From Mobula hypostoma (Eukaryota): DNA of 64,000 nucleotides. Every line of letters starts with the position of its first letter. The first letter of the stretch is position 1. The notes under the pieces are model-generated. The model saw only the letters and a program-made list of their open reading frames with translations. It was not told the origin of the DNA and did not search any database. Position numbers and translations under genes: made by a program. Below are positions 7,609 to 59,397 of the stretch, one piece after another. The stretch is taken from positions 190,464,001 through 190,528,000 of the forward strand of contig NC_086101.1 of the NCBI RefSeq assembly GCF_963921235.1. Reading direction: 5' to 3'.

Positions 7609-8007
7609 CCAATATTTCCAGTGTGATCCCAGGTTTGGACTCAGCCTTGAAGGTGCCCAGGCCCTGCCGACTAATTTCCACACGGCAGAAGTATTGATCG
7701 CTGTCATCCAGCGTAGCGTTCTGCAGCTCCAGGGCGGCATTTCCCTTTCTCGGGTCCCCAGCCAGTCTGTACCGGCCTTCAATATTTGTGTGAACTTCAT
7801 TCTCAAACTCCTTGCTGCCCTTGCTCCTGTTAGTCACGTTGAACAATACCGGCCCTTCGTAAAACACCTTTATCTTCCAGATGATGACAATCTCAACGGT
7901 CGTGTACTCAGTGTAGGGAGACTTTAAAGTGCAGGGCAAAACCACCGAATGTCCGACAGTACCGTTCACTCTCTCCGGGACCTCCACAGACATAAGGTCT
8001 GGGTCTC
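7609..8007 (-). CDS. SIGLEC15-like: Gene A exon: Ig V-set domain of a Siglec-15-like receptor
   Basis: Acceptor ctttatccctacag|GA and donor TTGG|gtaaat; 399 nt, phase 1-1. Translation (G)DPDLMSVEVPERVNGTVGHSVVLPC...IIWK...GRYRLAGDPRKGNAALELQNATLDDSDQYFCRVE...ESKPGITLEIL has the canonical C, W and D-x-x-x-Y-x-C. It resembles the Siglec-15 V domain as I recall it (GRFRLLGNPRRNDLSL...YFCRVEF...ESRHGVRLHV). Confidence 0.9.
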
Positions 8008-9769
8008 CTGTAGGGATAAAGAGTCTGAGCATAAAGGACGTCTCACCTTGGACAATCAACGATGTCACAATGCAAGAAGAACACAAACAACAGAACTACA
8101 GTACATGATAAACAAATCAAACTCCAAGTTCAAGTTTATTCCATTTAGCTGTTCATCGCCAGGCGAAACAATGTTCCTCCTGACCAAGGTGGACAACGCA
8201 GTACTTACGATCAAAGGAAGAAGCTGTTTCCTATCCTAACAGTCCTTGTCCTAATGCTACAGTACCTCATGCTTGATGGTAGGAGGGTTCAAAGAGATTG
8301 TTGGACGGATGGGAGGGACCACTGACAAAGCTAAGGGCCCTGCACACACAGTGCTCCAGATAAACATCTCAGATGGGTGTAAGAGAGACCCTGATGATCC
8401 TCTCAGCTGTCCTCACAATCCTGTGTAGGGACTTGAGGTCAGGTGTCTTGCAATTCCTGTACCAGACAGTGATGCAGCTGGTCAGAACACATCTCAATGT
8501 TCTGTAAAGGTTCTGGTGACTCTTCTGTCCAAGATCACAGGACATTGAAGGGAGTTGTGAACACAGTCCAGCCCAACACACAAAACCAGCCTCTCCTCCC
8601 TGTACTCCATCTACACGCTTGATTTTCAGCATCTGCAGGTTTTTTCCCAATGAAGCTGGGACCAATTCCTGAATGTAGAGTTGAGATAAAACATGGACAT
8701 ACAGACACAGCATGGGAACAGACCCGTATCTGAGAACACACCCACCCCCAGCTTTCCATGAACTCCCCCCTTGATTCTACAATCCTCCTACACACTACAC
8801 AGACTAGAGGCAATTTGTAGTGGCCGATTAACCAATCAACCTGCACGTCTTTGGGATGTAGGAGGAAATAGGAACTTCCAGGGGAAAGACCATAAGACAC
8901 GGGAGAAAATTATGCCATTTGGCCCAACAATTCTTCTCCACCATTCTACCTTAGCTGATTTATTGTCCTACCTTCTCCTGATAGCTTTTGATATACTTAC
9001 GAATCAAGAATCTATCAAACCCCACTTTAAATACACCCAATGACATGGCCTCCAAGAGCTGTCTGTGGCAATGAATTCCACAGATTCATCACCCTCTGTC
9101 TAAAGACATTCCTCCTCATCTCTGTACTAAAGGGACGCCCTTCTATTCTGAGGCTGTGCGCTTTGATCCTAGACTCTCCCACTATTGGAAACTTCTTCTC
9201 CCTGTCCACTCAATCCAGGCCTTTCAATGTTCGATAGATTCCAATGAGATTCCCCCCGCACCCCACCGCTCATTCCTCTAAACTATGAGTACAGGCACAG
9301 AAATATCAAATGTTCCTCACATGTTAACCCTTTCGTTCCTAGGATCATTCTCGTGAACTTCATCTGGATCTTCTCCAAGGCCAGCACATGCTTTCTCAGA
9401 TAAGGGCCCAAAACTGCTCATAATATTCCAAGTGTTGTCTGACCAATGCCTTAAAAATTCCACACAGGCAGCACCAGAGGTCAGGATTAAATCCTGGTCA
9501 CCTGAACTGTGGAGCAGTGCACCAGGTGTACTACTGTGATGCTCAGAGAAAGAGGCTGAGGCAGATACAATTCTAACGCATAAAGATATCTGGATGAGTA
9601 AATGGATTGCTTTATTATTATCACATGTCCCAAGATATAGTGAAAATCTTTTGTTTGTGTGCGATCCCCAGAGATCATTCCATACACAAGTACAAAAGGG
9701 AAAAGAGAGAGCAGACTAGCTCGGAGTTTTGGAGTTGGGAAGTTACGTTATGGGTATTGGATGACACAG

Positions 9770-10660
9770 ACGTTGGGGGTGTTGTGGATAGTCGGGAGGG
9801 CTGTCGGAGGTTACAGCGGGACATCGATAGGATGCAGGACTGGGCTGAGAAGTGGCAGATGGAATTCAACCCGAATAAGTGTGAAGTGGTTCATTTTGGT
9901 AGATCCCATTTGAAGACAGAATATATTATAAATGGTAAGACTCTTGGCAGTGTGGAGGATCTGAGAGATCTTGGAATCCATGTCGATAGGACCCTCAAAG
10001 CTGCTGTGCAGGTGGACATTGTTGTCAGAAAGCGTGTGGAGTGTTGGCACTCATCAACCATGGAACTGAGCTCGGGAGCCGGGAGGTGATGTTACAGCCA
10101 TATAAGACCTTCGTCAGATCTCACCTGGAGTACTGTGTTCAGTTCTGGTCACCTCATTACAGGAAGGATGTGGATACTACAGAGAGAGTGCAGAGGAGAC
10201 TTACAAGGATGTTACCTGGATTGGAGGGCGTAGCTTATGAGAATAGGTTGAGTGAACTTGGCCTTTTCTCCTTGGAGCGACAGACGATGAGAGATGACCT
10301 GATAGAGGTGTATAAGATGATGAGAGGCATTGATCATGTGGGTAGCCAGAAGCTTTCTCCCAGGGCCGAAATGGCTAACACAAAGGGGCATAGTTTTTTG
10401 GTGCTTGGAAACAGGTATTGAGGGGATGTCAGGGGTAAGTTTTTCACGCAGGGAGTGGTGGGTGCGTGGAATGCACTGCCAGCGGCAGTGGTGGAAGTGG
10501 ATACAATAGGGTCTTTTAAGAGCCTCTTAGACAGGTACCTGGAGCTTAGAAAAATGGAGGGCTATGTGCTAGGGAAATTCCAGGCAGTCTCTAGAGCAGA
10601 CTACATGGTCAGCAGAACATTGTGGGCTGAAGGGCCTGTAATGTGCTGTAAATTTCTATG
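9770..10660 (+). mobile_element. CR1 LINE 3' fragment
   Basis: LQRDIDRMQDWAEKWQMEFNPNKCEVVHFGR; RSHLEYCVQFWSPHYRKDV; 3'UTR with ctatg tail. Confidence 0.85.
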
Positions 10661-11877: not shown

Positions 11878-11987
11878 GGAAACTCCCACAAACTCCCAGC
11901 TGCACTGAGGCATTCTGAGGACCTGCAATGACTCAGAAAGCTTTTCTCTTGAGGAAAGAATTTTCCCCACTGCTCGCGTCAGTCTCT

Positions 11988-12027
<40 letters not shown>

Positions 12028-12190
12028 GCTTTTCTCTTGAGGAAAGGATTTCCCCCACTGCTCTTGTTAGTCACTCTCCCTCTAACACACTTTTCTTTCC
12101 TGCTTCTCAGTGCACCGTGTTGGTGAAACGGCCCTCGTAAACTTCCACGGCTCCCACAGTTAGGAAAACCACAAGTGGCTTCCGGTTTAA
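11878..12190. promoter_or_regulatory. Candidate intronic enhancer in gene A intron 1
   Basis: GGAAACTCCC (11878-11887); a duplicated 37-bp unit (11939-11975 and 12027-12063) with kappaB-like ...GGATTTCCCC around a (CT)n tract; RUNX-like AACCACA and ETS-like TTCCGG near 12165-12185. Confidence 0.3.
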
Positions 12191-14879: not shown

Positions 14880-17800
14880 GGCGAAGGCAAGGTAAGTTTA
14901 TTTCCTTTTCTTATTTAACTCTTGAAAGTATAGGGGGTATGTCTGCAGGGTCAGTGTTTTGTTCTGGGTGTCAGATGTGGGATTTCCAGGAGACATTCCG
15001 CCTCCCTGATGGCCACATCTGCGCCAGGTGCATGGAGGAGCAGTTCCTTAGGGACAATGCTAAGGAACCAGAGCTGCAATTCGATGACCTTCGGCTTGTT
15101 AGGAAAAATAAGGGGATGATAGACAGGAGTTACAGGGAGATAGTCACCTGAAGACTACAGGAGATAGATACATGGGTGACTGTGAAGAGAGGGAAAGGAA
15201 AACGTCAGATAGTGGACAGCACCCCTGTGACCGCCCCCTCAACAATAAGTACTCCATTTTGAGTACTGTGTACCTGAGGGAAGCAACAGTGGCTGTGCCT
15301 CTGGGACTGAGACTGGCCCTGTGGCTCAGATGGGTAGGGAATGGAAGAGGATAGCAGCAGTAATAGGGGGCTCTATAGTTAGGGGACAAATAGGCAATTC
15401 TGTGGACGCAAAAAAGAAACACGAATGGTAGTTTGCCTCCCAGGTGCCAGGGTCTGAGATGTTTCTGAACATGTCCACAATATCCTGAAAAGGGAAGGTG
15501 AACAGCCAGAGGCCATGGTACATATTGGAACCAACAATATAGGTAGGAAGAGGGAGGAAGTCCTGAAAACAGACTACAGGGAGTTAAGAAAGAAGCTGAG
15601 AAGCAGGACCTCGAGGGTGGTAACCTCAGGATTATTTCCTGTGGCACGCCACAGTGAGGATTGGAATAGAATGAGGTGGCAGATAAATGCGAGGCTGAAG
15701 AATTGGAGTAGGGGGCAGGGATTCAGATTTCTGGATCACTGGAACCTCTTCTGGGGTAGGTGTGACTTTTTCAAACGGGATGGATAGCATTTGAATCCGA
15801 GGGGTCCAATATTGGGAGTGGTTTAAACTAATTTGGCAGAAGGGTGGGAACCAGTATGATAGAGCTGAGGATGAGCCAGCAGGTTTACAAGTAGATGATG
15901 TCATCTGTAATATGAATGTAGGGGACAAGCCATTGATGGGGTACAAATGCAGACAGTGCAAAGAGTTAAGTTGTACCACAGTTAAAAATTCAAAAGGGCG
16001 AAGAATGCAGGACTGAAGGTGACTGTCAGGAGAGGGAAGGGGAATAGACAGAATGAGCAGAGCACCCCTGTGGCCGATCCCATCAATAATAAGTACATCA
16101 TTTTGGATACTGTTGATGGGGATGACCTACCAGGGACAAGTTGCAGTGGTTGCGTCTCTGGCACCGAGACAGGACCCTCAGCTCAGAAGGGAAGGAGGGA
16201 AAAGAGGAGAGCAGTAGTGATAGGGGATTTGATAGTTAGGGGGACAGATAAGAGGTTCAGTGAAAGAGATCGAGAATTTTGGATGGTCGGTTGCCTCCCT
16301 GGTGCTGGTCCACGATATCTTGGATCGAGTTCTAGGTATTCTCAAGAGGGAGGGTGAACAGCTGGATGTCGTGGTCCATGTAGGGACCAATGACGTGGGT
16401 AGGAAGAGTGAGGAAGTCCTGAAAGGTGAGTTTAGGGAGTTAGGCGCCAAGTTAAAGAACAGGACCTCCAGGATAGCAATCTCAGGATTGCTACCAGTGC
16501 CACGTGCAGGCGGGTTTAGAAATAGTAAGGTAGCTCAGATCAACACGTGGCTGAAGACATGGTGCAGGAGGGAGGGCTTCAGATTTATCGATAATTGGGC
16601 AGTTTTCCAGGGAAGGTGGGACTTGTTCCGGCAGGACGGTTTACATCTGAACTGGAGGGGGACAAATATTCTTGCAGGTAGGTTTGCTAGAGAGGCTCTG
16701 GTGGATTTAAACTAGATACAAGGGGGGAGGGGAACTATAGTGTAGGAACAGATGTAGGGGAGAAGGAAGAAAAAGAAAATAGTAAAGTTGTTTGCACTGT
16801 TAGTGTTAAACAGAGAGTAAGAGGTGGAAAATTTCTTAAATGCATTTATTTTAATGCCAGGAGCATTATAAGAAAGGTGGAGAGCTTAAAGTATGGATTG
16901 ATACCTGGAAGTATGATGTGGTAGCAATTAGTGAAACATGGTTACAGGAGGGGTGTGATTGGCAGCTAAATATTACTGGATTTAAGTGCTTCAGGTGTGA
17001 TAGAATCGGAGGGACAAGAGGGGGAGGTGTTGCATTGCTTGTCAGAGAAAATATTACAGCGGTGCTCTGGCAGGATAGATTAGAGGGCTCGTCTAGAGAG
17101 GCTACTTGGGTGGAACTGAGGAATGAGAAAGGTGCAGTAACACTTATAGGGGTATATTATAGACCCCAAATGGGGAGCGAGAATTGAAGGAGGAAATTTG
17201 TAAGGAGATAGCAGATATCTGTAGTAAGCACAAGGTCGTGATTGTGGGAGATGTTAATTTTTCACACATAGACTGGGAAGCCCATATTGTAAAAGGGCTG
17301 GATGGTCTGGAGTTTGAAAAATGTGTGCAGGATAGTTTTTTGCTGCAATACATTGAGGTACCAAATAGAGAAGGGGAAGTGTTGGTTTTCCTGTTAGGGA
17401 ATGAGATAGGTCAGGTCACGGAGGTATGTGTTGGGGAGCACTTCGGGTCCAGTGATCACAATGCCATTAGTTTCAATGTAATTATGGAGAAGGATAGATC
17501 TGGACCGAGGGTTGAGATTTTTGATCGGAGAAAGGCTAACTTTGAGATACAAAAGGATTCAGAAGGAGTGGATTGGGACAATTTGTTTTATGGGAAGAAT
17601 GTAACAGAGAAATGGAGGTCATTTAAAGGTGAAATTTTGAGGGTACAAAATCATTATGTTCCTGTTCGGTTGAAAAGAAAGGTTAAAAGTTTGAGAGAGC
17701 CATGGTTTTCAAGGGATATTGGAAACTTGGTTCAGAAAAAGAGAGATATCTACAATAAATATAGGCAGCATGGAGTAAATGAGGTGCTCGAGGAACATAA

Positions 17801-20800
17801 AGAATGTAAAATGAATCTTAAGAAAGGAATCAGAAAAGCTAAAAGAAGATATGAGGTTGCTTTGGCAAGTAAGGTGAAAATAAATCCCAAGGGTTTCTAC
17901 AGTTACATTAATAGCGAAAGGACAGCGAGGGATAAAATTGGTCCTGTAGAGAATCAGAGTGGATGGCTATGTGTGGAGTCAAAAGAGAAAGAGGAGATTC
18001 TGAACAATTTCTTTTCTTCGGTATTCACTAAGGAGAAGGATATTGAATTGTGTAAGATAAAGGAAACAGGTAGAGAAGTTATGGAAATTATGATGATTAA
18101 AGAACAGGAAGTACTGACACTTTTAAGGAATATAAAAGTGGATAAGTCTCCGGGTCCTGACAGGATATTCCCTAGGACCTTGAGGGAAGTTAGTGTAGAA
18201 ATAGCAGGGGCTCTGACAGACATATTTCAAATGTCATTAGAAACAGGGATGGTGCCGGAGGATTGGCGTATTGCTCATGTTGTTCCATTGTTTTAAAAGG
18301 GTTCTAAGAGTAAACCTAGCAATTATCGGCCTGTGAGTTTGATGTCAGTGGTGGGTAAATTGATGGAAAGTATTCTTAGAGATGGTATATATCATTATCT
18401 GGATAGACAGGGTCTGATTGGGAACAGTCAACATGGATTTGTGCGTGGAAGGTCATGTTTGACAAATCTTATTGAATTTTTTGAAGAGGTTACTAGGAAA
18501 GTTGATGAGGGTAAAGCGGTGGATGTTGTCTATATGGACTTCAGTAAGGCCTTTGACAAGGTTCCACACGGAAGGTTAGTTAGGAAGTTTCAAACGTTAG
18601 GCATTAATATTGAAGTAGTAAAATGGATTCAGCGGTGGTTGGACGGGAGACACCAGAGAGTAGTGGTGGAAACTGTTTGTCAGATTGGAGGCCAGTGACT
18701 AGTGGTGTGCCTTAGGGATCTGTACTGGGTCCAATGTTGTTTATCATATACATTAATGATCTGGATGATGGGGTGGTAAATTGGAGTAGTAAGTATGCAG
18801 ATGATATTAAGATAGGTGGAGTTGTGGATAATGAAGTAGGCTTTCAAAGCTTGCAGAGAGATTTAGGACAGTTAGAAGAGTGGGCTGAAAGATGGCAGAT
18901 GGAGTCTAATGCTGATAAATGTGAGGTGCTACATTTTGGTAGGACTAATCAAAATAGGACATACATGGTAAATGGTAAGGCACTGAAGAATGCAGTAGAA
19001 CAGAGGGAGCTAGGAATAATGGTGCATAGTTCCCTGAAGATGGAATCTCATGTGGATAGGGTGGTGAAGAAAGCTTTTGGTATGCTGGCCTTTATAAATC
19101 AGAGCATTGAGTATAGGAGTTGGGATGTAATGTTGAAATTGTACAAGGCATTGGTAAGGCCAAATTTGGAGTATTGTGTACAGTTATGGTCAGCAAATTA
19201 TAGGAAAGATGTCAACCAAATCAAGAGAGTACAGAGAAGATTTACTAGATTTACTAGATTTACCTGGGTTTCATCACCTAAGTTACAGAGAAAAAACAAG
19301 TTGGGTCTCTGTTCTTTGGAAAGTAGAATGTTGAGTGGGGACTTGATAGAGGTAGTTAAAATTATGAGGGGGACAGATAAAGTTGACGTGGATAGGCTTT
19401 TTCCATTGAGAGTGAGGGAGATTCAAACAAGAGGACATGAGTTGAGAGTTAAAGGGCAAAAGTTTAGGGGTAACATGAGGGGGAACTTCTTTACTCAGAG
19501 AGTGGTGGCTGTGTGGAACGAGCTTCCAGCAGAAGTGGTTGAGGCAGGTTTGATGTTGTCGTTTAAAGTTAAATTGGATAGCTATATGGACAGGATAGGA
19601 ATAAAGGGTTATGGGCTGAGTGCAGGTCGGTGGAACTAGGTGAGAGTAAGAGTTCAGCACGGACTAGAAGGGCTGAGATGGCCTGTTTCCGTGCTGTAAT
19701 TGTTATATGGTTATATATGGTTATTTAAATGTAGGCAGTATTCAGAATAAAGTGGACGAACTCGTGGTGCAATTACAGATTGGTCAGTATGACGTTGTGG
19801 GCATTACTGAGTCATGGCTGAAAGAAGGACAGGCAGGAGGGCATAGGCTCTGTTGGTAAGAGATGGAATTACATCTTTAGAAAGAGGTTACATAGGGTCA
19901 GAGAATGTCGAATCTTGTTGGTGCAAGGGTGAAAAAAGATTATGGGAATCATATATAGGTCTCCAAATAGTAGCCAAAATGTGGGGTTGAGATTGCAAAC
20001 GGAGCTGGAAAAGGTAATAAGGGTAATGTCACAATTATAATGGGGGACTTCAATATGCAAGGGGATTGGGAAAATCAGGTTGGTGTCAGACCGCGAGAGG
20101 GGGAATCTGTCTACGAAATGGCTTTTTTTACTACAGCTTGTGCTTGAGCCTACTCAGGGAAGGCTATCTGAGACTGGGTGTTGTGTGATAACCCGAATTT
20201 TACTAGGGAGTTTAAGGTAAAGAAATACTTGGGAGGCAATGATCATAATATGATTGAATTCATACTGCAGTTTGAGAGGGGAAAGCTAAGGCAGACGGAG
20301 TAAAGGGAATAACAGAGGCACAGAGAGGAGCTTGCCCAGGTGGAATGGAGGGGAATACTGGCAGGGATGACAGCAGGGATAAGAAGTTTTCTAGTAATAG
20401 TTCACAAAATGCAGGATAGGTATGTCCCACAGAGGAAGAAGTTCTCAAATGGCAGTGCTAGGCAACAGTGGCTGACAAGGGAAGTTAAGGACTGCATAAA
20501 AGCCAAGGAAAGGACATATAATCTAGCAAAAGTGAGTGGGAAGTTGGATGATTGGAAAGTTTTTAAAATTCAACAAAAGGCAACTAAAAAATGCCTAAAG
20601 GGAAAAGATGAAATATGAGGGGAAACTAGCCAATAATATAAAGCAGGATACCAAAAGTTTTTTCAGTTATATAGAGAGTAAAAGGGAGGTGAGAGTTGAT
20701 ATTGGACTGGAAAATGATGCTGCTGAGGTAGTAATGGGGATAAAGAAATGGCAGATGAATTTAAATTGTACTTTGCATCAGTCTTCACTGTGGAAGACAC

Positions 20801-22575
20801 TAGCAGTGTACCAGAGGTCTGTGAGTGTCAGGGAGCAGGAGTGAGTGCCATTGCTATTACAAAGGAGAAAGTGCAAGGCAAACTGAAAAGTCTTAAGGTG
20901 GATAAGTCACCTGGACCAGATGGACTACACCCCAGAGTCCTGAGAGAGGTTGCTGAAGAGATAACAGATGCGTTGGTCATGATCTTTCAACAATCACTTG
21001 ATTCTGGCATGGTTCCAGAGGACTGGAAGATTGCAAATCTCTCTCCGCTCTTTAAGAAGGGAGGAAGGCAAAAGAAAGGAAATTATAGGCCAGTTAGCCT
21101 AACCTCAGTGGTTGGGAACGTGTTAGAGTCCATTATTAAGGATGAGGTTTCAAGGTACTTCGAGACTAATAATAAAATAAGTCAAAGTCAGCATGGTTTC
21201 TGTAAAGCGAAATCTTGCCTGACAAATCTTTTAGAGTTCTTTGAGGAAGTAACAAGCAGGGTGGACAAAGGAGAGGCAGTCGATGTCATTTACTTGGACT
21301 TTCAGAAGGCATTTAATAAGGTGCCACACATGAGACTACTTAACGAGATGAAATCCTATAGCATTACAGGAAAGATATTGACATGGATAGAGGAATGGCT
21401 GACAGGCAGAAACAGCCAGTGGGAATAAAAAGGGCCTTTTCTGCTTGGCTGCCAATGACTAGTGATGTTCCTCAGGGGACAGTTTTGGGACTGCTACTTG
21501 CCACATTGTTTGTCAGTGATTTAGATGACGAAATTGATGGCTTTGTTGCAAAGTTTGCAGATGATACAGAAGTAGGCGGAGGGGGTAGGAAGTGCTGAGG
21601 AAGCCATGCATTTGCAGAAGGACCTGGACAAATTGGAAGAATGGGCAAAAAAGTGGTAGATGGAGCAAATGTGTGGACTATTATCTAAATGGGGAGAAAA
21701 TTCAGAGGTGCAAAAGGACTTAGGAGTCCTCATGCAAGACTCCCAGCAGGTTGAGCCTGTGGTAAAGAAGGCAAATGCAATGTGGCATTTATTTCAGGGG
21801 TAACAGAATATAAAAGCAAGGAGATATTGCTGAGGCTTTATATGACACCGGTCAGGCCACACTTTGTCAACAGATTTGGGGCCCATATCTCAAAAAGGAT
21901 GTGCTGTCATTGGAGAGAGTCCAGAGGATGCTCATGAGGATGATCCTGGGAATGAAGGGGCTAACATATGTGGAGCATTTGACAGCTTTGGGCCTGTTCG
22001 CACTGGAACTTAGAAGAATGCAGAAGGATCTCATTGAAACCTAATGAATGTTGGAAGTGCTAGATAAGGTTGATATGAAGAGGACATCTCCTCTGGTGGG
22101 GGAGTCTAAGATTAGAGCAGACAACCTCAGAATACAGGGATGTACATTTAGAATGGTGATGAGGAGTAAGTTCTTTAGATAGAGAGTGGTGAAACTGTGG
22201 AATTTGTTGCCACATGCGCTGTGGAGGCCAAGTCATTGGGTATATTTAAGGCAGGTGTTGATACATTCTTAATTAGAACTAGAGGGTACTGGCTCGAAAT
22301 TGTTGGGCAATCCTTTAGAACCGAAGTAAGGAGGAATTTTCTAGCCAGAGAGCAGTGAATCTGGGGAATGCTCTGTCACGGACTGCTGTAGAGGCGAAGA
22401 CTGTAGGTACATTCAAGGCAAAAATTGATAGTTTCCTGATTTGTCGGGGCATCAAAGGTTATGGCAAGAAGTCATATGTAAGGGGTTGAGTGGGATCTGG
22501 GATCAGCCATGATGGAATGATGGAGCAGACTAGATGGGCTGAATGGCCTGATTTGGCTCCTATGTCTTATGGTCT
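14880..22575 (+). mobile_element. Degenerate CR1 (host copy): ORF1 14880-15870; ORF2 interrupted at about 16020 and resuming at about 19730
   Basis: ORF1 CSGC..C zinc-finger-like and SGNH-esterase motifs (VHIGTNN); ORF2 start KNAGLKV | LNVGSIQNKVDEL...GITESWL; RT fragments (SQHGFCKAKSCLTNLLEFFEEV); 3' tail tcttatgg. Confidence 0.8.
16020..19725 (+). mobile_element. CR1 nested in CR1: partial ORF1 (SGNH esterase) + frameshifted EN/RT ORF2
   Basis: VVHVGTNDVG...DGLHLN; ISETWL, GVYYRP, GSSDHN, SQHGFVRGRSCLTNL, KYADD; tail (gttatat)n. Confidence 0.9.
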
Positions 22576-22579
22576 AAAA

Positions 22580-25818: not shown

Positions 25819-25876
25819 CTGAGATGAGCACCGCGGCCAGGAGTATTAAGAAGACCAGGAGGGGAGGGAAGGTCAT
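25819..25876 (-). CDS. SIGLEC15-like: Gene A exon 1: signal peptide MTFPPLLVFLILLAAVLIS(G)
   Basis: ATG at 25876, 19 mostly hydrophobic codons plus 1 nt, donor TCAG|gtaggt. Phase 1 joins in frame to the V exon at 8007 (G+GA=Gly). Lies at the edge of a CpG-rich unique island. Implied intron about 17.8 kb. Confidence 0.8.
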
Positions 25877-37400: not shown

Positions 37401-37745
37401 TGATGAGAGGCATTGATCATGTGGATAGTCAGAGGCTTTTTCCCAGGGCTGAAATGGTTGCCACAAGAGTACACAGGTTTAAGGTGCTGGGGAGTAGGTA
37501 CAGAGGAGATATCAGGGGTAAGTTCTTTACGTAGAGAGTGGTGAGTGCGTGGAATGGGCTGCTGGCAATGGTGTTGGATGAGGATACGATAGGGTCTTTT
37601 AAGAGACTCTTGGATAGGTACATGGAGCTTAGAAAAATAGAGTGCTATGGGTAAGCCTAGTAATTTCTAAGGTAGTGACATGTTCGGCACAACTTTGTGG
37701 GCCGAAAGGCCTGTATTGTGCTGTAGGTTTTCTATGTTTCTATGT
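34477..37745 (+). mobile_element. Degenerate CR1 LINE (partial ORF1 + broken ORF2)
   Basis: MVVCLPGARVRDV...VVHIGT; YFNARSI, GDSDHN, SQHGFVKGRSCL, KFADD; tail (ttctatg)n. Confidence 0.9.
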
Positions 37746-39189: not shown

Positions 39190-42100
39190 TCACCTCTTCT
39201 GGGGCAGGTGGGACCTGTACAAGAGAGACGGGTTACACTTGAACCACAGGGGGACCAATATCCTTTCAGGGAGGTTTGTTAGTGCTGTTGAGGAGGCTTT
39301 AAACTAGATTTGCAGGGGGATGGGAACCAGAGTGCCAGAGCTGACAGTGTGGCTGGGGTGAAAATAAATGGTGTTGAAAGTTTAAGCAAATCCGCTGATA
39401 GAAAGGTTGTGAGTGGTGGTAAAAATCTTCTGAGGTGTATATATTTCAATGCTAGGAGTATTGCGGGGAAGGCGGATGTGTTGAGGGCGTGGATTGACAC
39501 GTGGAATTATGATGTTGTAGCAATTAGTGAAACTTGACTACAGGAGGGGCAGGACTGGCAGCTTAATATTCCAGGGTTCCGATGTTTCAGATGTGATCGA
39601 GGCAGGGGAATGAAAGGTGGGGGAGTAGCATTGCTTGTTAGGGAAAATATTACAGCAGTGCTCAGGCAGGACAGATTAGAAGGCTTGTCTACTGAGTCCT
39701 TATGGGTGGAGCTGAGAAACAGGAAAGGTATGGCCACATTAGTGGGATTGTATTACAGACCACCCAATAGTCAACGAGACTTGGAAGAGCAAATCTGCAG
39801 AGAGATAGCAGGCAACTGCAGGAAACATAAAGTTGTGGTGGTAGGGGATTTTAATTTTCCATACATTGACTGGGACTCCCATACTGTTAGGGGTCTAGAT
39901 GGTTCAGAGTTTGTAAAATGTGTTCAGGAAAGTTTTCTAAATCAACATATAGAGGGACCAACTAGAGGGGATGCAATATTGGATCTCCTGTTAGCTAACG
40001 AATTAGGGCAAGTGACAGAAGTCTGTGTAGGGGAGCACTTTGGTTCCAGTGATCATAACACCATTAGGTTCAATTTGATCATGGACAAGGGTAGATCCGG
40101 TCCTAGGGTTGAGGTTCTGAACTGGAAGAAGGCCAAATTTGAAGAAATGAGAAAGGATCTAAGAAGTGTGGCTTGGGACAGGTTGTTCTCTGGCAAAGAT
40201 GTAATTGGTAGGTGGGAAGCCTTCAAAGGGGAAATTTTGAGAGTGCAGAGTTTATATGTTCCTGTCAGGATTAAAGGCAAATTGAATAGGAATAAGGAAC
40301 CTTGGTTCTCAAGGGATATTACAACTCTGATAAAGAAGAAGAGGGAGTTGTATGAAATGTATAGGAAACAGGGGGTAAATCAGGTGCTTGAGGAGTATAA
40401 GAAGTGCAAGAAAATACTTAAGAAAGAAATCAGGAGGGCTAAAAGAAGACATGAGGTTGCCTTGGCAGTCAAAGTCAAGGATAATCCAAAGAGCTTTTAC
40501 AAGTATATTAAGAGTAAAAGGATTGTAAGGGTTAAAATCGGTCCTCTTGAAGATCAGAGTGGTCAGCTTTGTGCGGAACCAGAGGAAATGGGGGAGATCT
40601 TAAATAGGTTTTTTGCATCTGTATTTACTAAGGAAGCTGGCATGAAATCCATGGAATTGAGGGAATCAAGTAGTGAGGCCATGGAAACTGTACAGATTGA
40701 AAAGGAGGAGGTGCTTGCTGTCTTGAGGAAAATTAAAGTGGATAAATCCCCGGGACCTGACAGAGTGTTCCCTCGGACCTTGAAGGAGACTAGTGTTGAA
40801 ATTGCGGGGGCCCTGGCAGAAATATTTAAAATGTTGCTGTCTACGGGTGAAGTGCCGGAGGATTGGAGAGTGGCTCATGTTGTTCCGTTGTTTAAAAAAG
40901 GATCGAAAAGTAATCCGGGAAATTATAGGCCGGTGAGTTTAACGTCAGTAGTAGGTAAGTTATTGGAGGGAGTACTAAGAGACAGAATCTACAAGCATTT
41001 GGATAGACAGGGGCTTATTAGGGAGAGTCAACATGGCTTTGTGCGTGGTAGGTCATGTTTGACCAATCTGTTGGAGTTTTTCGAGGAGGTTACCAGGAAA
41101 GTGGATGAAGGGAAGGCAGTGGATATTGTCTACATGGACTTCAGTAAGGCCTTTAACAAGGTCCCGCATGGGAGGTTAGTTAGGAAAATTCAGTTGCTAG
41201 GTATACATGGAGAGGTGGTAAATTGGATTAGACATTGGCTCGATGGAAGAAGCCAAAGAGTGGTAGTAGAGAATTGCTTCTCTGAGTGGAGGCCTGTGAC
41301 TAGTGGTGTGCCACAGGGATCAGTGCTGGGTCCATTATTATTTGTCATCTATATCAATGATCTGGATGATAATGTGGTAAATTGGATCAGCAAGTTTACT
41401 GATGATACAAAGATTGGAGGTGTAGTAGACAGTGAGGAAGGTTTTCAGAGCCTGCAGAGGGACTTGGACCAGCTGGAAAAGTGGGCTGAAAAATGGCAGA
41501 TGGAGTTTAATACTGACAAGTGTGAGGTATTGCACATTGGAAGGACAAACCAACGTAGAACATACAGGGTTAATGGTAAGGCACTGAGGAGTGCAGTGAA
41601 ACAGAGGGATCTGGGAATACAGATACAAAATTCCCTAAAAGTGTCGTCACAGGTAGATAGGGTCGTAAAGAGAGCTTTTGGTACATTGGCCTTTATTAAT
41701 CGAAGTATTGAGTATAAGAGCTGGACTGTTATGATGAGGTTGTATAAGGCATTGGTGAGGCCGAATCTGGAATATTGTGTTCAGTTTTGGTCACCAAATT
41801 ACAGGAAGGATATAAATAAGGTTGAAAGAGTGCAGAGAAGGTTTACAAGGATGTTGCCGGGACTTGAGAAACTCAGTTACAGAGAAAGGTTGAATAGGTT
41901 AGGACTTTATTCCCTGGAGCGTAGAAGAATGAGGGGAGATTTGATAGAGGTATATAAAATTATGATGGATATAGATAGAGTGAATGCAAGCAGGCTTTTT
42001 CCACTGAGGCAAGGGGAGAAAAAAACCAGAGGACATGGGTTAAGGGTGAGGGGGGAAAAGTTTAAAGGGAACATTAGGGGGGGCTGCTTTACACAGAGAG

Positions 42101-42318
42101 TGGTGGGAGTATGGAATGAGCTGCCAGACGAGGTGGTAAATGCGGGTTCTTTTTTAACATTTAAGAATTAATTGGACAGATACATGGATGGGAGGTGTAT
42201 GGAGGGATATGGTCCGTGTGCAGGTCAGTGGGACTAGGCAGAAAATGGTTCGGCACAGCCAAGAAGGGCCAAAGGGCCTGTTTCTGTGCTGTAGTTTCTA
42301 TGGTTCTATGGTTCTATC
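39190..42318 (+). mobile_element. Young CR1 LINE: end of ORF1 + near-intact EN-RT ORF2 (39310-42237), inserted in the 3'UTR of an older CR1
   Basis: Provided ORFs 39310-39537 and 39610-42171 are in the same frame; nonsense codons at 39535-39537 and 42169-42171; RT motifs (SQHGFVRGRSCLTNL, SGVPQGSVLGP, FTDD); tail (ttctatgg)n. Host CR1 continues as 38750-39190 and 42318-42400. Confidence 0.95.
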
Positions 42319-43544: not shown

Positions 43545-46075
43545 CATAGTCATACTTTATTGATCCCGGGGGAAATTGGTTTTCGTTACAGTTGCACCAT
43601 AAATAATTAAATAGTAAAAAACCCATAAATAGTTAAATAGTAATATGTAAATTATGCCAGGAAATAAGTCCAGGACCAGCCTATTGGCTCAGGGTGTCTG
43701 ACCCTCCAAGGGAGGATTGTAAAGTTTGATGGCCACAGGCAGGAATGACTTCCTATGACGCTCTGTGTTGCATCTCGGTGGAATGAGTCTCTGGCTGAAT
43801 GTACTCCTGTGCCCAACCAGTACATTATGTAGTGGATGGGAGACATTGTCCAAGATGGCATGCAACTTGGACAGCATCCTCTTTTTAGACACCACCATCC
43901 CCACAACATCAGTGGCCTTACGAATGAGTTTGTTGATTCTGTAGGTGTCTGCTACCCTCAGCCTGCTGCCCCAGCACACAACAGCAAACATGATAGTACT
44001 GGCCACCACAGACTCGTAGAACATCCTCAGCATCGTCCAGCAGATGTTAAAGGACCTCAGTCTCCTCAGGAAATAGAGACAGCTCTGACCCTTCTTGTAG
44101 ACAGCCTCAGTGTTCTTTGACCAGTCCAGTTTATTGTCAATTCGTATCCCCAGGTATTTGTAATCCTCCACCATGTCCACACTGACCCCCCGATGGAAAC
44201 AGGGGTCACCGGTACCTTAGCTCTCCTCAGGTCTACCACCAGCTCCTTAGTCTTTTTCACATTAAGCTGCAGATAATTCTGCTCACACCATGTGACAAAG
44301 TTTCCTACCGTAGCCCTGGACTCAGCCTCATCTCCCTTGCTGATGCATCCAACTATGGCAGAGTCATCCGAAAACTTCTGAAGATGACAAGACTCTGTGC
44401 AGTAGTTGAAGTCCGAGGTGTAAATGGTGAAGAGAAAGGGAGACAAGACAGTCCCCTGTGGAGCCCCAGTACTGCTGATCACTCTGTCGGACACACAGTG
44501 TTGCAAGCACATGTACTGTGGTCTGCCAGTCAGGTAATCAAGAATCCATGATACCAGGGAAGCATCCACCTGCATCGCTGTCAGCTTCTCCCCCAGCAGA
44601 GCAGGGCAGATGGTGTTGAACGCACTGAAGAAGTCAAAAAACATGACCCTCACAGTGCTCGCTGGCTTGTCCAGGTGGGCGTAGACACGGTTCAGCAGGA
44701 AGACGATGGCATCCTCAACTCCTAGTCGGGGCTGTAGGCGAACTGGAGGGGGGATCTAAGTGTGGCCTGACCACAGGCTGGAGCAGCTCCAGAACAAATC
44801 TCTCCAGGGTCTTCATGATGTGGGAGGTCTATGCCACCGGTCTGTAGTCATTGAGGCCGCTGGGGCGCGGCGTCTTCAGCACAGGGACGAGGCAGGATGT
44901 CTTCCACAGTACAGGAACCCTCTGGCGCCTCAGGCTCAGGCTGAACACAAGGCGAAGTACGCCACATAGCTGAGGGGCACAGGCTTTGAGCACCCTGGTA
45001 CTGACACCATCCGGTCCTGCAGCCTTGCTTGGGTTGAGATGTTTCAGCTGTCTTCTCACCTGTAGAGCTGTGAAGCCCACCGTGGTGGTTTCATGTGGGG
45101 AAGGGGTATAGTCATGAGAGTAGGGTGGGAGACTGTGAGGAGGGGTAGGAGAGGAGAGTGGAATATGCGTTGGTTGGGGGCCGACAACAGATGGCTCATG
45201 TGGGGGATGGGCAGGGGTCACAATGTCAAATCTGTTAAAGAACAGGTTAAGTTCATTGGCCCTGTCCACACTGCCTTCAGCTCCTCTGTTGCTAGTTTGC
45301 TGGAACACAGTGATGGTCCTCATCCCCCTCCAGACCTCTCTCATGTTGTTCTGCTGGAGTTTCCACTCAAGCTTCCTCCTGTACCTGTCTTTAGCCTCCC
45401 TGACCCTGGCTTTCAGGTCCCTCTGTATTGCCCTCAGCTCCTCCCTATTCCCATCTCTAAACACCCTCTTTTTAGCGTTCAGGATGTCCTTGATGTCCTT
45501 TGTCGCCCATGGCTTGTTATTTGAATAACAAAGGACAGTTCTTGTCGGAACATTGCAGTCCACACAGAAGTTGATGTAATCAGTGATGCACTCTGTGAGC
45601 CCATCAATATCCTCTCCATGTGGCTCACAGAGTGCCTGCCAGTCTGTCACCTCAAAACAACCCTGGAGCGCCTCATAAGCCTCCTCCGATCACTTCCTCA
45701 CTGTCCTCGAGGTTGCAGGTTTACTCTTCACCAGAGGCACACAGCAGGGTTTTAGATGCACCAGGTTGTGATCTGCCCTTCCCAGTGGGGGGAGGGGAGA
45801 GGAGCTGTATGCATCCTTAACGTTAGCGTACATCAAATCCAGAGTCCTCTCCCCTCTGCTTGTACAGCTCACATACTGCGTGAAGTTGGGCAGTGTTCTA
45901 GCCATGGTAACCTGGTTGAAGTCACCTGAGATGGTAATGAGGGCACTCGGGTGCTGGGTTTGTAATCTGGCTATGACAGTGTAAATGATGTTACACGCCG
46001 ACGTCGGGTTGGCAGAGGGAGGGATGTACACAACAACCACAATTGCATGCGAGATTTCCCTTGGCAAAGAATATG
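43545..46075 (-). mobile_element. Rex1/Babar-like LINE, 5'-truncated in the endonuclease domain, frameshifted
   Basis: VVYIPPSAN, TLDLMYANV, NDYRPVA, FFDFFSAFNTI, GAPQGTVLSPFLFTIYT, KFSDD; 3' end with (GACTAT)n at 43545; same family as 13350-14200. Confidence 0.9.
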
Positions 46076-47210: not shown

Positions 47211-48528
47211 AAATAACAAGATAAAGAGACCTTAAAGTGAGATTATTGGTTGTGGGAACATCTCTATGAGTGGGAAAGTGAGTGTAGTTATCCCCTTTTG
47301 TTCAAGAGCTCAATCGTTGTGGGGTAGTAACTGTTCTTGAACCTGGTGATGCGAGTCCCTAGGCTCTTGTACCTTCTACCTGATGGCAGCAGCAGGACGA
47401 GAGCATGGCCTGGGCGGTGAGGATCTCTGATGATGGATGCTGCTTTTTATGTAGATGCGTTCAATAGTTGGGAGGTCTTTACCCATGATGTACTGGGCTG
47501 AATCCACCATCTTTTGTAGGATTTTCCATTCAAGGGCACTGGTGTTTCCATACCAGGCCGCGATGCAGCCAGTCAATACACTCTCCACTACACATCTGTA
47601 GAAGTTTGTCAAAGTTTTTGATGTCATGTTGAATCTAGTGTGAGCTCTCTTCAATTTTAGACCCACCAGTGTGGTTGTCTCTTAAGTGCCATCTAACTGG
47701 CCAGCAGCCACTGTTCAAGGAACAACTTTTTTCAGCACATAAATTTATATGTAGTGTCAGGAATTTGCTGTGGTGTGTTGTCAGGGTGTGACATGCAACA
47801 GAAACAACATTCAGTGATTATAAGGAATAAATAACTATATAAAAATAAACAGAGAGGTTAAAGTACAGATATTGGAATAATATGTGCGTAAATACATAAA
47901 TTCCAACATGTATTTAAACAGCTGTACAAAAAGTGGTTTAAAGTGCTTCCAGTGCAGTGGTCGAAATGATAGAGAGGGTAGCAGCTCAGGTTAACTGCCT
48001 GGGAGATGAAATTTGTAAGATGGTGTGAAGTTTTTGTTTTAATTGCCCTATAAAATTTTCCAGAAAGGCAGTTTGCCTGGTGGGTAACAATTAGCAAAGA
48101 GCATTAATTCCCAACCTTGGAAGAGGTGCCAATGTCCTGAATAATGAGTAAATAAAGGAATGTGGCAGTGGAACATCACTAATTGGGACCAATGGGTGTG
48201 GAAATCCAATCAATAAATAATAATATTAGCTATGGACAAGATTGCTTGTAACACTAAGGCTGAGTATACATGCCATTTCAGCAGCTGACAAATTTAATTT
48301 GCTCTTATTTCCCTCACTTCCCCTTTAACACATTACTGCAATTCATCCCACTCACTTGGAAACCACTTCCACTTTCCTACTAAAACTCAGGTTAAGAAGT
48401 AAAATTCTCAATTCCTCTTTGGGACTTCTGGTAAATGTGTTTCCGGTGCCTGCTCTTGGAAACATTGCGTAATTATTAACCAATTCTATTGTTACTTTCT
48501 TTTATGTCCTGTTATTCTCTCAATAAAC

Positions 48529-49020
48529 TACACATGATTGAACAAAAGTGTAAAAGTTGTGTGATTGGACAAGGTGTATAAACTACACTCAATTGGACAT
48601 AAGTGTAAAAGCTACATGATTGGACAAAGGTGTAAAACTACACCTGATTGGACAAAGATGTAAAAGCTACACATGATTGGACAAAGATGTAAAAGCTGCA
48701 AATGATTGGATAAAGGTGTAAAAACTACAAACAAGAGAAAATCTGCAGATGGTGGAAATCCAAGCAACACACACAAAATGCTGGAGGATCTCAGCAGGCC
48801 AGGCAGCATCCCTGAAACATCGACTGTACTTTTTTCCATAGATGCTGCCTGGCCTGCTGAGTTCCTCCAGCCTTTTGTGTAAAATCTACTCCAGATTGGA
48901 CAAAGGTGTAAATACTTCACGTGATTGGACAAAGGTGTAAATACTGCACGTGATTGGACAAAAGTGTAATTACTGCACATGATTGGACAAGAGTGTGAGC
49001 ACTACATGATTGGACAAAGC
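48529..49020 (+). repeat. About 28-bp minisatellite (ctacacatgattggacaaaggtgtaaaa), about 12 units, interrupted by a Penelope-terminus hairpin
   Basis: Directly visible tandem units; insertion at about 48727-48880. Confidence 0.9.
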
Positions 49021-49484
49021 CAGAGTGGGTCTCTGAAAGGGAGGTAATGCTTAAAGAATCTACTAGAACAATTTGAAGCTATATAAAGTTCAAAGTTCAA
49101 ACTAAATTTATTATCAAAGTAGATATATGTCTCCATACATTAACTTGAAATTTATTTTCTTGCAGAAATTTATGGGAAAAAATTAGTACAATGGAAAAAG
49201 CTACACATAAATAGACAAGGATTGATAAATATAAACACAAGATATGCTGCAGTTGATGGAATTCCAGAGTAACACAAACAAAATGCTGAAGGAATTCAGC
49301 AGGTCAGGCAGCATCTACGGAGAGGAATAAACAGTTGACTTTCCAGGCTGAGACCTTTCATCAGGACTGGAAAAGAAGAAAGAAGAGGTCAAAATAAGAA
49401 GGTGAGAGGCGGGGTGGGAAAGAGTACAAGCTGGCAGATGATAGGTGAGACCATGTGATGGGGACGGAGGTGGATGGGGAAGGT

Positions 49485-49700
49485 AGGCGGATGAGGAAGT
49501 CAGTGGATGGGGAAGTCAGTGGATGGGGAAGGCAGTGGGTGGGGAAGGCAGTGGATGGGGAAGGCAGTGGGTGGGGAATGCAGCAGATGGGGAATGCAGC
49601 AGATGGGGAATGCAGCAGATGGGGAAAGCAGATGGATGGGGAATGTCGGTGGATGGGGAAGGCAGACAGATGGGGAAGGTGGCGGATGGGAAGGCAGTGG
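49485..49700 (+). repeat. About 16-bp G-rich minisatellite (ggcagtggatggggaa)n inside a minus-strand Penelope terminal repeat
   Basis: Directly visible tandem units. Confidence 0.85.
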
Positions 49701-51073
49701 ATCAGGATAAAGTAAGAATCTCAGATTAATAGGTGGAGGAAGGAACCTGAAAGGAGAGGAGAGTGGACCATGGGAGAAAGAGAAGGAGAGGGGGAACCAG
49801 ATGGTCGAGATAGGCAGGGCAAAGTCAAAGTGGGTCTTTGATGGGAAGATCATGTCAACACTAGAGCATTTTGAATCTGTACAAAATTTGAAGTAAATTG
49901 ACTATCAAAGTGTACATATGTTACCATATGAACCTTGAGATTCATTTTCAGTGGGTGAAAATGTTGTCTCCCAGATTTCTATTTAATCTCTCTCCTCTCA
50001 CCTTACACCCATGCCGTCTGGTTTCAAAAGAGCGTGTGTGCGTTCACCCTGTCCATACCCCTGGTGGTACTCATTCATTTGTCTGTGGTGACAAAAAGGT
50101 CATTTGCACACATCAACACGAGAACTGCAGTCATTTTGATGACTGAGTCACACTGGAAAATGCATGGCAGGTAAAGGCTGAAGTGGATCAATTTGTGGTT
50201 ATCCACTTCTGTTTCCAAAGCGGAAAGCTATTATTCCCAATGAAGTCCTTCTGATGAGCCCCGATGAAGGGTCTCGGCCCGAGTCATCGACTGTTTATTC
50301 CTGACCTGCTGAATTCCTCCAGTATTGTGTGTGTGTTTCTCAAGATTTCCATTATCTGCAGAACCTCTTGTGTTTCAACTATTATTCTCTGTGTGGTGGT
50401 GGACTGGAAAGGGGAGATACAACATCTGCATCAGGCAGAAGGTACCACAGAATAAAAACAAAGAGAGTTCGGCTGGTTCACAGCTTGTTCTTCTGGGCTG
50501 TGAGGCTTCTGAACGCCCTGCTGTGACTCAGAGAGCCCCCGTACGTATACTTGAATTTACAAATGCTGAGGGAGCTTGTTCATAAGTACAAATGTCCATA
50601 AGTCAATTATTTATAACCTATGGACAATCTGTACAAAAGGGAGATGTTCTTTTACATAGCATCCTTATGTCAGGACACTTTTTAAAGTTTTGGTAAACAC
50701 AATTAGTGTTCACGTGGAAAAGATTGTACTGTTCACAGTTACACACACAAAATGCTGGAGGAACTCAGCAAGTCAGGCAGCATCAGCAGAGAGGTACAAA
50801 GAGTCAGGCCGAGACCCTTCATCCAGATTCAAACCTTCAAACTTTTCACAACATTCTCCAAAGATGTTCATTTTAGTAAAACCCCTAAGAATAGGTCAAA
50901 ATGGAAGTGCTTGTGTTCCAGTGGATGCTGTGTTTTCCATGGTCCAGAATTGCCACGTCTTCTGAATTATAGTGCGTCAATAAGTAGAATCATTCCGTCA
51001 ACATACAAGAAACTGCTCTCCCCAGGTGTTCAAACTCATTGTGAATGGGGATTGTTGTAAATGTACGAATCTT

Positions 51074-51081
51074 TCAGTTCT
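51074..51081 (-). CDS. Possible terminal coding micro-segment of gene B (adds E-N-stop)
   Basis: Strong minus-strand acceptor tttttgttcccttgccag at 51082-51099 in unique sequence; phase-1 reading gives (G)AG AAC TGA. Other acceptors compete (near 50150 and at 43325). Confidence 0.3.
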
Positions 51082-53576: not shown

Positions 53577-53957
53577 CTTTTATCTTAATGAAGAGAATGA
53601 TGCCTGTTATTAGAAGGAGAAGAAACTTAATCAGTGGAATCAGGCACAGCATTCCGATGATGAAATTCGAGTAACTGTTATCGGTGGCGGACAGGTCAAT
53701 CTCGCGCGTGTCTCTTCCGTGTCCATTCTCAGCCACGCAGTGGTAGCTTCCTCCCGTCCTGGGGCGGAAAAGCTCCCCAACAACCTGATGTCGCTCTGGA
53801 TCTCGCGTGAATCTCATCTCACTACCGTTGGCGGGCAATGCACTGTTCTCAGGGCCGATCCACGTGATGATTGCAGGGGGTTCTCCTTCAGCCCTGCACA
53901 CCAGGGTCTCTCTGTCATCATCAGTCACAAGAGACAGCTCCAGGATGGTGGCTGGGA
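53577..53957 (-). CDS. SIGLEC15-like: Gene B exon: Ig C2-set domain + stalk + transmembrane helix with Lys
   Basis: Acceptor tttttgtttctcctcgag|TC and donor AAAG|gtacct; 381 nt, phase 1-1. (V)PATILELSLVTDDDRETLVCRAEGEPPAIITWIGP...HQVVGELF...GSYHCVAENGHGR...FIIGMLCLIPLIKFLLLLITGIILFIKIK matches recalled Siglec-15 C2/TM motifs (CTAEGEPPPALAWSGP, HLVTAELP, GRYTCTAANSLGR, FKALLLLG). Confidence 0.92.
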
Positions 53958-54189
53958 CTCGAGGAGAAACAAAAANNNNNNNNNNNNNNNNNNNNNNNNN
54001 NNNNNNNNNNNNNNNNNNNNNNNNNNNNNNNNNNNNNNNNNNNNNNNNNNNNNNNNNNNNNNNNNNNNNNNNNNNNNNNNNNNNNNNNNNNNNNNNNNNN
54101 NNNNNNNNNNNNNNNNNNNNNNNNNNNNNNNNNNNNNNNNNNNNNNNNNNNNNNNNNNNNNNNNNNNNNNNNNNNNNNNNNNNNNNNAT

Positions 54190-57340: not shown

Positions 57341-59037
57341 TTTATGCCATTAGATATGTGCTCAATGGGGAATGATTCCGGCGCTCTGCAGATGAAGCAG
57401 GGAGTGGGCAATGCTTTCTAAATGGCAGCAGAGACAAACAGGCCAAATAGCCTTGCTCTGTGTTGTAAAATTCCACTAGTCTGCACTGAGGCTGCAGTTA
57501 ACACCTTGCACAGTTTCTTTGCCAGCACCCGTCAGTCCCATGACGAACTTCTACCACCTTTGAATGACAGGCACAGAGAAATACTGTCAAGTTTCCCAGT
57601 TGCCACTATCCAGGCCAGTCCCTCTTCTTGCTACTACCGTCAGGAAAGAGTTACAGGAGCCTCAGGCCCCACACCACAACACTGAACTGATTCTACGACC
57701 TGCAGACTCTCTTTCAAGCACTCTTTACAACTCACGTTCACAGTATTGTTTTAATTTACATAGTCTGAATTCCCTTATGCATTGATTGTTTGTCAGTCTT
57801 CCTTTATGTCTGGTATTTCATAAGTTTTATTGTATTCTTACAAGTGTATTTTATTCTCTATTGATTATGTAGTTCCAGTAATATCTATAAACTGTAATTC
57901 ATTTAATTGTATCTGGTGTTTTGTCTGTTATTTGGGCGGGGTGGGGTACATCACACAGCATCCACACAAACTAATTACCCATTTTGGCGGGGCTGAGGGC
58001 TGTTTCCCTAGACGACAGTGAGCCGAGCGACCCTGAGGGTGGCCGGGGGGGCTACACAAGCTTACAAGAAAATGAATCTCGAGGTAGTTCAGTTTGTTTT
58101 CTTTTGCACATTGAACATTTGCCAGTCTTTCTGGGAGCCCGCGGCATCCGATTACACCATGTGACCAATTAACCTACTAACCGGTACACCTTTGGGACTG
58201 TGGGAGGAAACTGGAGCACCCAGAGGAAACCCACACAGTCACAGGGAGAACGTACAAACCCCTTGCAGACAGCAGCGGGAATTGAACCCAGTTCACTGTA
58301 ATAGTGTGATGCTAACTGCTAGGCTACCGTGACATACCACCATCATTTCCTCCTGGAGTCCTCTGGGGCCCTTCCATGATGTTTTATTTAGAGATAGAGC
58401 AGGGTAACAGGCTGTTCTGGTTCAAAGACCCAGTGTCACCCATTTACGCCCATGTAACCAATTAACCTATTAATCCGGAGGAAAATGACGTGGTCACAGG
58501 AAGAAAGTAGAAACTCTTTACAGACTGTGGTGGTCACTGGTGCTGTAATACTAACTTACATATAGTATTTTTTGTAAGATTCTATTGCATTTCTTTTTCC
58601 CTGTAAATATCTGTAAGCAAACAAATCTCAAGTTAGTACATGGTAACATACACGATTTTTAATGGGAAATTTACTTTGAAAGTTGAAGTTGAGTGAAATT
58701 AATTTAAAGTTGATGTGGAATTTGAAAACTGTGTAACTTTGAAGTTACACACCTCCCTGACCTGGAAACAAAATGCTGCCAATTCGATCTAAATTCTGGG
58801 AGCTTCTGCTCAGACGTGCTGGGGGAGCACCGTCACCGCAGGGACAGCAGCAGCTCAGACAGGGAGTCTGCCACCACTCTGCTGAGCAGAAGGGAGTGCA
58901 GATGGGTAAGAAATGCTGGTGCTAGCCACGATCTCCTTATGAATAAAGAGAAACACCATCAAATCCACTCCAGGACGAACGATGCTAAGGCTCAAGAATT
59001 ACGGCTGCTGTTCTCACTGACAAAGGTGTTTCCTTAC

Positions 59038-59397
59038 CTATAACCTGGAGTCCTGTCTCGTCCTGAATCACCGTTTCCCATGTGGAATTCCTGACCCAAA
59101 CACAACAGAAATAATCACCAGAGTCATTCATTCTGAGGTCCGTCACCCCGATGGAGGCGTCTCCCTGCTCTGGGTTTCCCACCAGCTCATAGCGACCTCC
59201 TTCGTTTACAGTGATGGTGTAGGGAGTGCTGACGGAGCTGGAGCGAGTCTGATTGAAGACAGTGGTCCCTTTCCAAGGATTCCCCTTCGTCCAGAGGATA
59301 GTGATGGACGCAACTTTCTTATCAAGGGGGCTGAAGGAACAGGGCAGTCTGGAAGAACCTCCCCTCTTCCCGATCACCGAAGTTGCTTTGAAACCAC
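59038..59397 (-). CDS. SIGLEC15-like: Gene B exon: Ig V-set domain of a Siglec-15-like receptor (essential Arg replaced by Cys)
   Basis: Acceptor ttctctatccaag|GT and donor ATAG|gtaagg; 360 nt, phase 1-1. (G)GFKATSVIGKRGGSSRLPCSF...ILWTKG...GRYELVGNPEQGDASIGVTDLRMNDSGDYFCCVWV...TGLQVI. Splices in frame to 53957. Confidence 0.9.

Follow-up and report, generated by a model that had tools for sequence, protein, structure and literature searches.

Human Siglec-15 unites in one protein a lectin site and a coupling site for an adaptor: R143, which stands beside C142 on strand F, is required for sialic-acid binding (PMC10264397, PMC7226832), and Lys274 of the transmembrane segment is required for DAP12 (PMC6941304). 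Its solved structure, PDB 7ZOZ, comprises residues 20-263 and ends before the transmembrane segment (PMC10264397). The literature that we found on the evolution of Siglec-15 deals with teleosts and tetrapods only (PMC7226832); our search returned no work on Siglec-15 in cartilaginous fishes and, likewise, nothing relevant on DAP12 in elasmobranchs or sharks. Here we analysed a stretch of 64,000 nucleotides from the ray Mobula hypostoma (contig NC_086101.1, positions 190,464,001 to 190,528,000; hereafter the window, with positions counted from its first letter), whose minus strand carries the 5' end of one gene, gene A (LOC134347242), and the 3' part of another, gene B (LOC134346377, named "Siglec-15" by NCBI), in head-to-tail tandem. 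Both genes exist as RefSeq models and are as such already known; what the window adds is a conserved A/B pair between whose members the hallmarks of Siglec-15 are split. We consider it likely that A and B go back to an ancient duplication within the Siglec-15 lineage, A being the arginine-bearing, lectin-type member and B the lysine-bearing, adaptor-coupled one.

The comparison with the human receptor reveals a different likeness for each gene. Gene A resembles human Siglec-15 in its overall layout of V domain, C2 domain, transmembrane segment and tail (its C2 domain lies outside the window) and in the Cys-Arg pair, C142-R143 in the human protein (PMC10264397): the gene A V domain reads YFCRVE, with an arginine that is invariant in nine orthologs. 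Gene B resembles it in the C2 domain and in a lysine in the middle of the transmembrane helix, Lys274 in the human protein (PMC6941304). Neither ray gene has both hallmarks, however, since the transmembrane segment of A (IIGILVGSIIVMILIVIVLVI) is uncharged in Mobula and other rays, and B lacks the arginine, carries an extra V domain and thus has a V-V-C2 rather than a V-C2 layout, and ends in a tail of only five residues. At the arginine position gene B has leucine in its first V domain, V1 (YTCLVEL), and cysteine in its second, V2 (YFCCVW). The cysteine pair that forms the C95-C104 bridge of human Siglec-15 is found in neither gene. Each paralog thus retains a different hallmark of bony-vertebrate Siglec-15, the arginine in A and the lysine in B. 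Siglec-15 is treated as a conserved receptor, present in a single copy, that has both properties in one protein; the ray and shark pair indicates that the two can sit in separate neighbouring genes.

The RefSeq protein of gene B (P0176, XP_062903800.1) has 404 residues arranged as leader, V1, V2, C2, transmembrane segment with lysine, and a terminal "EN". An earlier note on this DNA, drawn up from the letters alone, had described the gene as V, C2 and transmembrane segment; the V domain that it saw is the membrane-proximal V2, which belongs to a V clade of its own. The transmembrane lysine and the missing arginine of gene B are confirmed. The lysine lies mid-helix in the transmembrane segment NFIIGMLCLIPLIKFLLLLITGIILFIKIK, in the portion LCLIPLIKFLLLLITG, with 12 hydrophobic residues before the lysine and 15 after it. 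It is kept in all ten elasmobranch species compared, and 27 to 30 of the 30 transmembrane residues are identical, whereas identity in the adjoining C2 domain drops to 49-62% when Mobula is compared with skates or sharks. Within a pair that predates the divergence of sharks and rays and has persisted in both, the membrane helix of B has thus been conserved far more than its ectodomain. Together, the five-residue tail, the buried lysine and the nearly frozen helix of gene B are what one expects of an activating receptor that couples to an adaptor. Gene B would have no signalling of its own and is predicted to pair, through this lysine, with an aspartate-bearing adaptor of the DAP12 class that carries an immunoreceptor tyrosine-based activation motif. 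Comparable cases are Siglec-14, Siglec-16 and mouse Siglec-H, which are activating and have a charged transmembrane segment; the similarly short tail and basic transmembrane residue of gene B would imply adaptor coupling. Human Siglec-XII has lost the canonical arginine, as gene B has. All four are mammalian CD33-related Siglecs and are not close to gene B in sequence.

The lost arginine might also mean that gene B is a copy in decay or a decoy, deprived of its lectin function and drifting like the Arg-mutated human Siglec-XII, and the Cys in V2, the Leu in V1 and a donor used by RefSeq isoform X3 inside the V2 exon, which would drop the last strands of that domain, agree with such a fate. We regard it as very improbable, because no stop interrupts the reading frame and every splice site is intact, because 1:1 orthologs of the same architecture and with a nearly invariant transmembrane segment occur across sharks, skates and rays, and because the entire C2-transmembrane exon is present in a sequencing run, X1, that we take to be RNA (see below). 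The arginine-less state is moreover common to most species (Leu in V1 and Cys, His or Tyr in V2, mostly Leu, His or Tyr overall), which makes it old and maintained. Gene B would bind its ligand in a way other than the canonical sialic-acid mode. The pair provides a natural experiment for separating functions that depend on the lectin site from those that depend on the adaptor.

Gene A encodes a RefSeq protein of 589 residues (P0001) with a signal peptide, one V domain, one C2 domain, the uncharged transmembrane segment and a tail of 313 residues. As judged from its sequence, the V domain, which keeps the Cys-Arg pair that in human Siglec-15 forms the salt bridge to sialic acid, would bind sialylated ligands, and gene A is most likely the sialic-acid-binding member of the pair. 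An inhibitory role for it is uncertain, since one conserved tyrosine of the tail fits the consensus of the immunoreceptor tyrosine-based inhibitory motif (ITIM), [ILVS]xYxx[ILV], in five of ten species, Mobula not being among them. This bears on the possibility that A and B are classical paired receptors, an inhibitory A and an activating B sharing one ligand, as in Siglec-5/14 or KIR2DL/DS. The two genes are indeed tandem neighbours, B has a transmembrane lysine and no tail, and half of the species have the ITIM-like tyrosine in A. The near-identical ectodomains of such pairs are nevertheless absent here, the ectodomains being only about 33% identical; the layouts differ (V-C2 in A, V-V-C2 in B), B lacks the arginine in both V domains, the Mobula motif SEYSRA departs from the ITIM consensus and Mustelus has phenylalanine in place of the tyrosine. 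We therefore judge classical pairing unlikely. The earlier note had raised a paired or decoy system as a possibility, and neither version finds backing, given the divergent ectodomains, the motif of Mobula A and the intact, strongly conserved gene B.

The tail of gene A is variable in its own right. In P0001, residues about 330 to 560 consist of tandem repeats of about 18 residues (ENASPMAVSQTPEGNPVT), and tail length varies among rays, with protein totals of 589 residues in M. hypostoma, 514 in M. birostris, 430 in Hypanus and 532 in Pristis. Skates and sharks lack these repeats, so that the expanded repeat tails set the A proteins of rays apart from theirs. The C-terminus EQDTEGSDK is kept among batoids. 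Shark and ray A proteins also differ at the outer edge of the transmembrane segment, where sharks have a lysine (LLKVII) and rays a tyrosine.

Next, we asked where the V domains belong. Of the proteins with a solved structure, mammalian Siglec-15 (human Q6ZMC9; PDB 7ZOZ) was the one that each of the three ray V types matched best. The gene A V exon (V-A) matched it with E 2.2e-15, other Siglecs following from 2e-8. A profile of A-V orthologs gave 3.6e-17 for Siglec-15 and 2.6e-10 for the next match, Siglec-10; a profile of B-V1 orthologs gave 5.9e-15, followed by CD33 at 7.7e-8, with 11 matches in total. For B-V2 the profile also placed Siglec-15 first among single domains (2e-13), but was less specific, with 940 generic V-set matches, and the piece of gene B that spans the G strand and the transmembrane segment returned generic Ig matches only in the PDB search. 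In the opposite direction, a turtle Siglec-15 query finds shark A proteins. These results bear on a reading in which the exons derive from a V-set family other than the Siglecs (B7/CD276, JAML, TIM, PILR or CD300) and were labelled Siglec-15 through an annotation artefact. The many generic V-set chains matched by the V2 profile would suit it, as would the higher summed scores of CD276 and a triple VH chain and the matches of the C2 exon alone to contactins and other I-set proteins. Those higher totals, however, add up matches to more than one domain. When domains are scored singly, each of the three V types has Siglec-15 as its top match, with a lead of seven orders of magnitude for A-V and B-V1, and the turtle query returns shark A proteins, which together leave a non-Siglec origin barely credible.

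A tree of 48 V domains is consistent with placement in the Siglec-15 lineage. It contains four clades, namely A (support 100/99), B-V1 including the chimaera Callorhinchus (83/62), B-V2 on a long stem (100/100) and bony-vertebrate Siglec-15 (96/91), and sets the four jointly apart from lamprey relatives (100/99). The gene B V exon within the window (V-B) lies in the B-V2 clade with 100/100. No order emerged among the four clades. By these sequence criteria, A and B both fall within the Siglec-15 lineage as ancient paralogs. Lamprey multi-V proteins (P0034, P0050 and P0053, one of them named "Siglec-12" by NCBI) form the outgroup closest to the gnathostome Siglec-15 clade in the tree. This is a hint that V domains of the Siglec-15 type preceded jawed vertebrates, though the long branches make the placement unsure. 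A lungfish protein annotated as "Siglec-15 isoform X2" (P0044, Protopterus annectens) resembles gene B in its V-V-C2-transmembrane layout and mid-helix lysine (LGIKLLLF); unlike gene B, it has the arginine in both V domains, and these two pair with each other (100/96) within the bony-vertebrate clade, so the lungfish V duplication was independent of that which gave V1 and V2 of gene B.

Within cartilaginous fishes, 1:1 orthologs of both genes, 58-91% identical and unchanged in architecture, occur in sharks, skates and rays. The gene A V domain is 90% identical in Hypanus, 67% in Amblyraja and 60-66% in sharks, and the gene B C2-transmembrane exon 91% in Hemitrygon, 63-64% in skates and 58-66% in sharks. 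Callorhinchus has a B-type protein (P0040) with the V-V-C2 layout and transmembrane lysine. The A/B pair thus appears to have arisen before the split of sharks and rays, and the B type before chimaeras split off, which makes the pair ancient and neither lineage-specific nor visibly diversifying, as had been supposed of it. The duplication behind it had been called old, and this we can corroborate. Over an alignment of 99 residues, 33% of positions agree between V-A and V-B (E 4e-12), the motif GRYxLxG[DN]P being common to both, and V-A and B-V1 are likewise about 33% identical. The pair anchors an expanded elasmobranch family of Siglec-15-like proteins, and the NCBI name "Siglec-15" covers two different genes in each elasmobranch species. 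More tentatively, and in our view less likely than not, the hallmarks may have been divided between the tandem paralogs already before the chimaera split, A losing the lysine and B the canonical binding, with the B type as the stem of a large family of shark and ray V-V receptors.

The gene models themselves could be read directly from the window (Table 1). The four minus-strand exons described in the earlier note lie where it had placed them, every junction is in phase 1, donors are GT throughout and, the first (leader) exon excepted, each is preceded by an AG acceptor after a pyrimidine tract; a local search found no other clear Ig exon in the window. The V2 exon of gene B is contained at 100% in P0176 (residues about 156-275), and the C2-transmembrane exon matches residues 276-402 at 100%. 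A short terminal exon completes the frame: its acceptor AG at 51083-51082, with 80% pyrimidine upstream, is the sole minus-strand match in 26000-53576 to AG followed by A[AG]AA[CT] and a stop, it reproduces the C-terminus KIKEN of P0176, and the 3' untranslated region runs on toward lower coordinates. The leader and V1 are situated past the window end: local tblastn gave no match to V1 in the window, and the gene span of 18,884 nucleotides, counted from 51074, ends at 69,957. For gene A, the leader and V exons proposed earlier are both part of P0001, although they are not its complete content. Local tblastn with the protein found no match to its C2, transmembrane and tail exons in window positions 1-6949, and the gene span of 43,353 nucleotides puts the gene end about 17.5 kb past the window start, where these exons lie.

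Table 1. Exons of genes A and B and assembly gaps in the window (nt, nucleotides; a slash marks the splice boundary).
Feature	Positions	Strand	Details
Gene B V2 exon (V-B)	59038..59397	-	acceptor AG 59399-59398; donor GTAAGG; Pfam V-set, E 1.3e-14
Gene B V2-C2 intron, assembly gap	53976..54187	.	begins 18 nt upstream of the C2 acceptor
Gene B C2/I-set and transmembrane exon	53577..53957	-	acceptor AG 53959-53958 after an 18-nt pyrimidine tract; donor GT 53576-53575; Pfam I-set/Ig
Gene B terminal exon, coding part (8 nt)	51074..51081	-	G/AG AAC TGA = ...KIK-E-N-stop
Gene A first coding exon	25819..25876	-	ATG 25876; donor GTAGGT; signal peptide MTFPPLLVFLILLAAVLIS(G); identical to the P0001 N-terminus
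Gene A V-set exon (V-A)	7609..8007	-	acceptor AG 8009-8008; donor GT 7608-7607; Pfam V-set, E 1e-11; 100% in P0001
Gene A V-C2 intron, assembly gap	6950..7512	.	flanked by CT-rich low-complexity repeat; 96 nt below the V-A donor

A and B are two separate, intact and probably transcribed neighbour genes; the earlier note had likewise proposed two separate Siglec-15-like genes in tandem. Their separateness follows from the end of the gene B frame at 51074, from the own ATG and typical signal peptide of gene A and from the occurrence of A and B as distinct proteins in at least six other species (including Heptranchias, Heterodontus, Mustelus, Scyliorhinus and skates); in Scyliorhinus torazame, where as in other species synteny was judged from adjacent locus tags and shared contigs only, the two bear consecutive tags (scyTo_0015103 and scyTo_0015104) on a single 141-kb contig. 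A single continuous transcript from B to A was rejected on account of the gene B stop, the ATG and signal peptide of gene A and the separate proteins elsewhere, and a reading of the exons as pseudo-exons on account of the open frame, the intact splice sites and the 1:1 orthologs.

Evidence for transcription was drawn from the share of sampled sequence words of a segment found in each sequencing run, the run type being only a guess of the tool. For the 381-nucleotide C2-transmembrane exon of gene B, 100% of the sampled words are present in run X1 (105 M letters), but practically none in X20 and X21, which come from the same study. For 7513-8400, a segment in which the V-A exon makes up 45% of the letters, the word share is 0.45-0.54 in runs X20 to X23, all of one study. 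Spliced RNA would give just such a share, equal to that of the exon, in runs whose size falls far short of genome coverage, and we infer that X1 and X20-X23 are RNA; the three RefSeq isoforms of gene B point the same way. The presence of V-A in X20 and X21 with about none of the gene B exon means that gene A occurs there without gene B, which favours separate genes.

Several points weigh against our reading of A and B as a divided Siglec-15 pair. The four V clades form a polytomy, in which neither A nor B is singled out as the strict SIGLEC15 ortholog, and in BLAST A is the better match of the turtle, caecilian and teleost proteins, while A and B match the lungfish protein about equally well. 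The tree covers V domains of A, B, non-mammalian bony-vertebrate Siglec-15 and lamprey relatives and contains no CD22, MAG or CD33 sequence. A V domain that lacks the arginine may still bind glycans non-canonically. Finally, the basis for transcription and junctions is RefSeq models together with word shares from runs of guessed RNA type.

The RefSeq isoforms X1 to X3 of gene B (P0176, P0030 and P0175) cover V-B, the C2-transmembrane exon and the EN terminus. Two tandem acceptors lie 6 nucleotides apart at 53951-53957 (gag/tcccag/cc), and isoform X2 uses the downstream one, so that isoforms X1 and X2 differ by Val-Pro at the V2-C2 boundary. The V2-C2 junction reads ...LQV[IV]-[VA]-PATILEL..., with nothing inserted, in P0176 and in the Hemitrygon, skate and shark orthologs; the assembly gap in this intron therefore hides no coding sequence, and the frame is independent of it. 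Likewise, the V-C2 junction of gene A (LEILG/APIIL) is unbroken in P0001 and in gene A orthologs, and the gap in that intron hides no coding sequence either. Both flanks of the latter gap (6743-6946 and 7513-7600) consist of a purine/pyrimidine repeat with a 15-nucleotide unit, GAGAGGGGGAAAGGG, in 14 copies, which is probably the cause of the assembly break.

The gene B stop and the gene A ATG are separated by 25.2 kb of DNA rich in long interspersed nuclear elements (LINEs). LINE-type open reading frames encoding endonuclease and reverse transcriptase occupy this intergenic DNA and the first intron of gene A, at 17184-21428 and 35694-42171 on the plus strand and at 29857-30420 and 44066-45650 on the minus strand; one of them has 853 residues (39610-42171), and they coincide with blocks of strong G-over-C skew (0.3-0.45). 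Beyond the last exon of gene B, the intergenic DNA also contains two short tandem arrays, at 48523-48729 (units of 29/55 nucleotides) and at 49457-49702 (units of 16 nucleotides).

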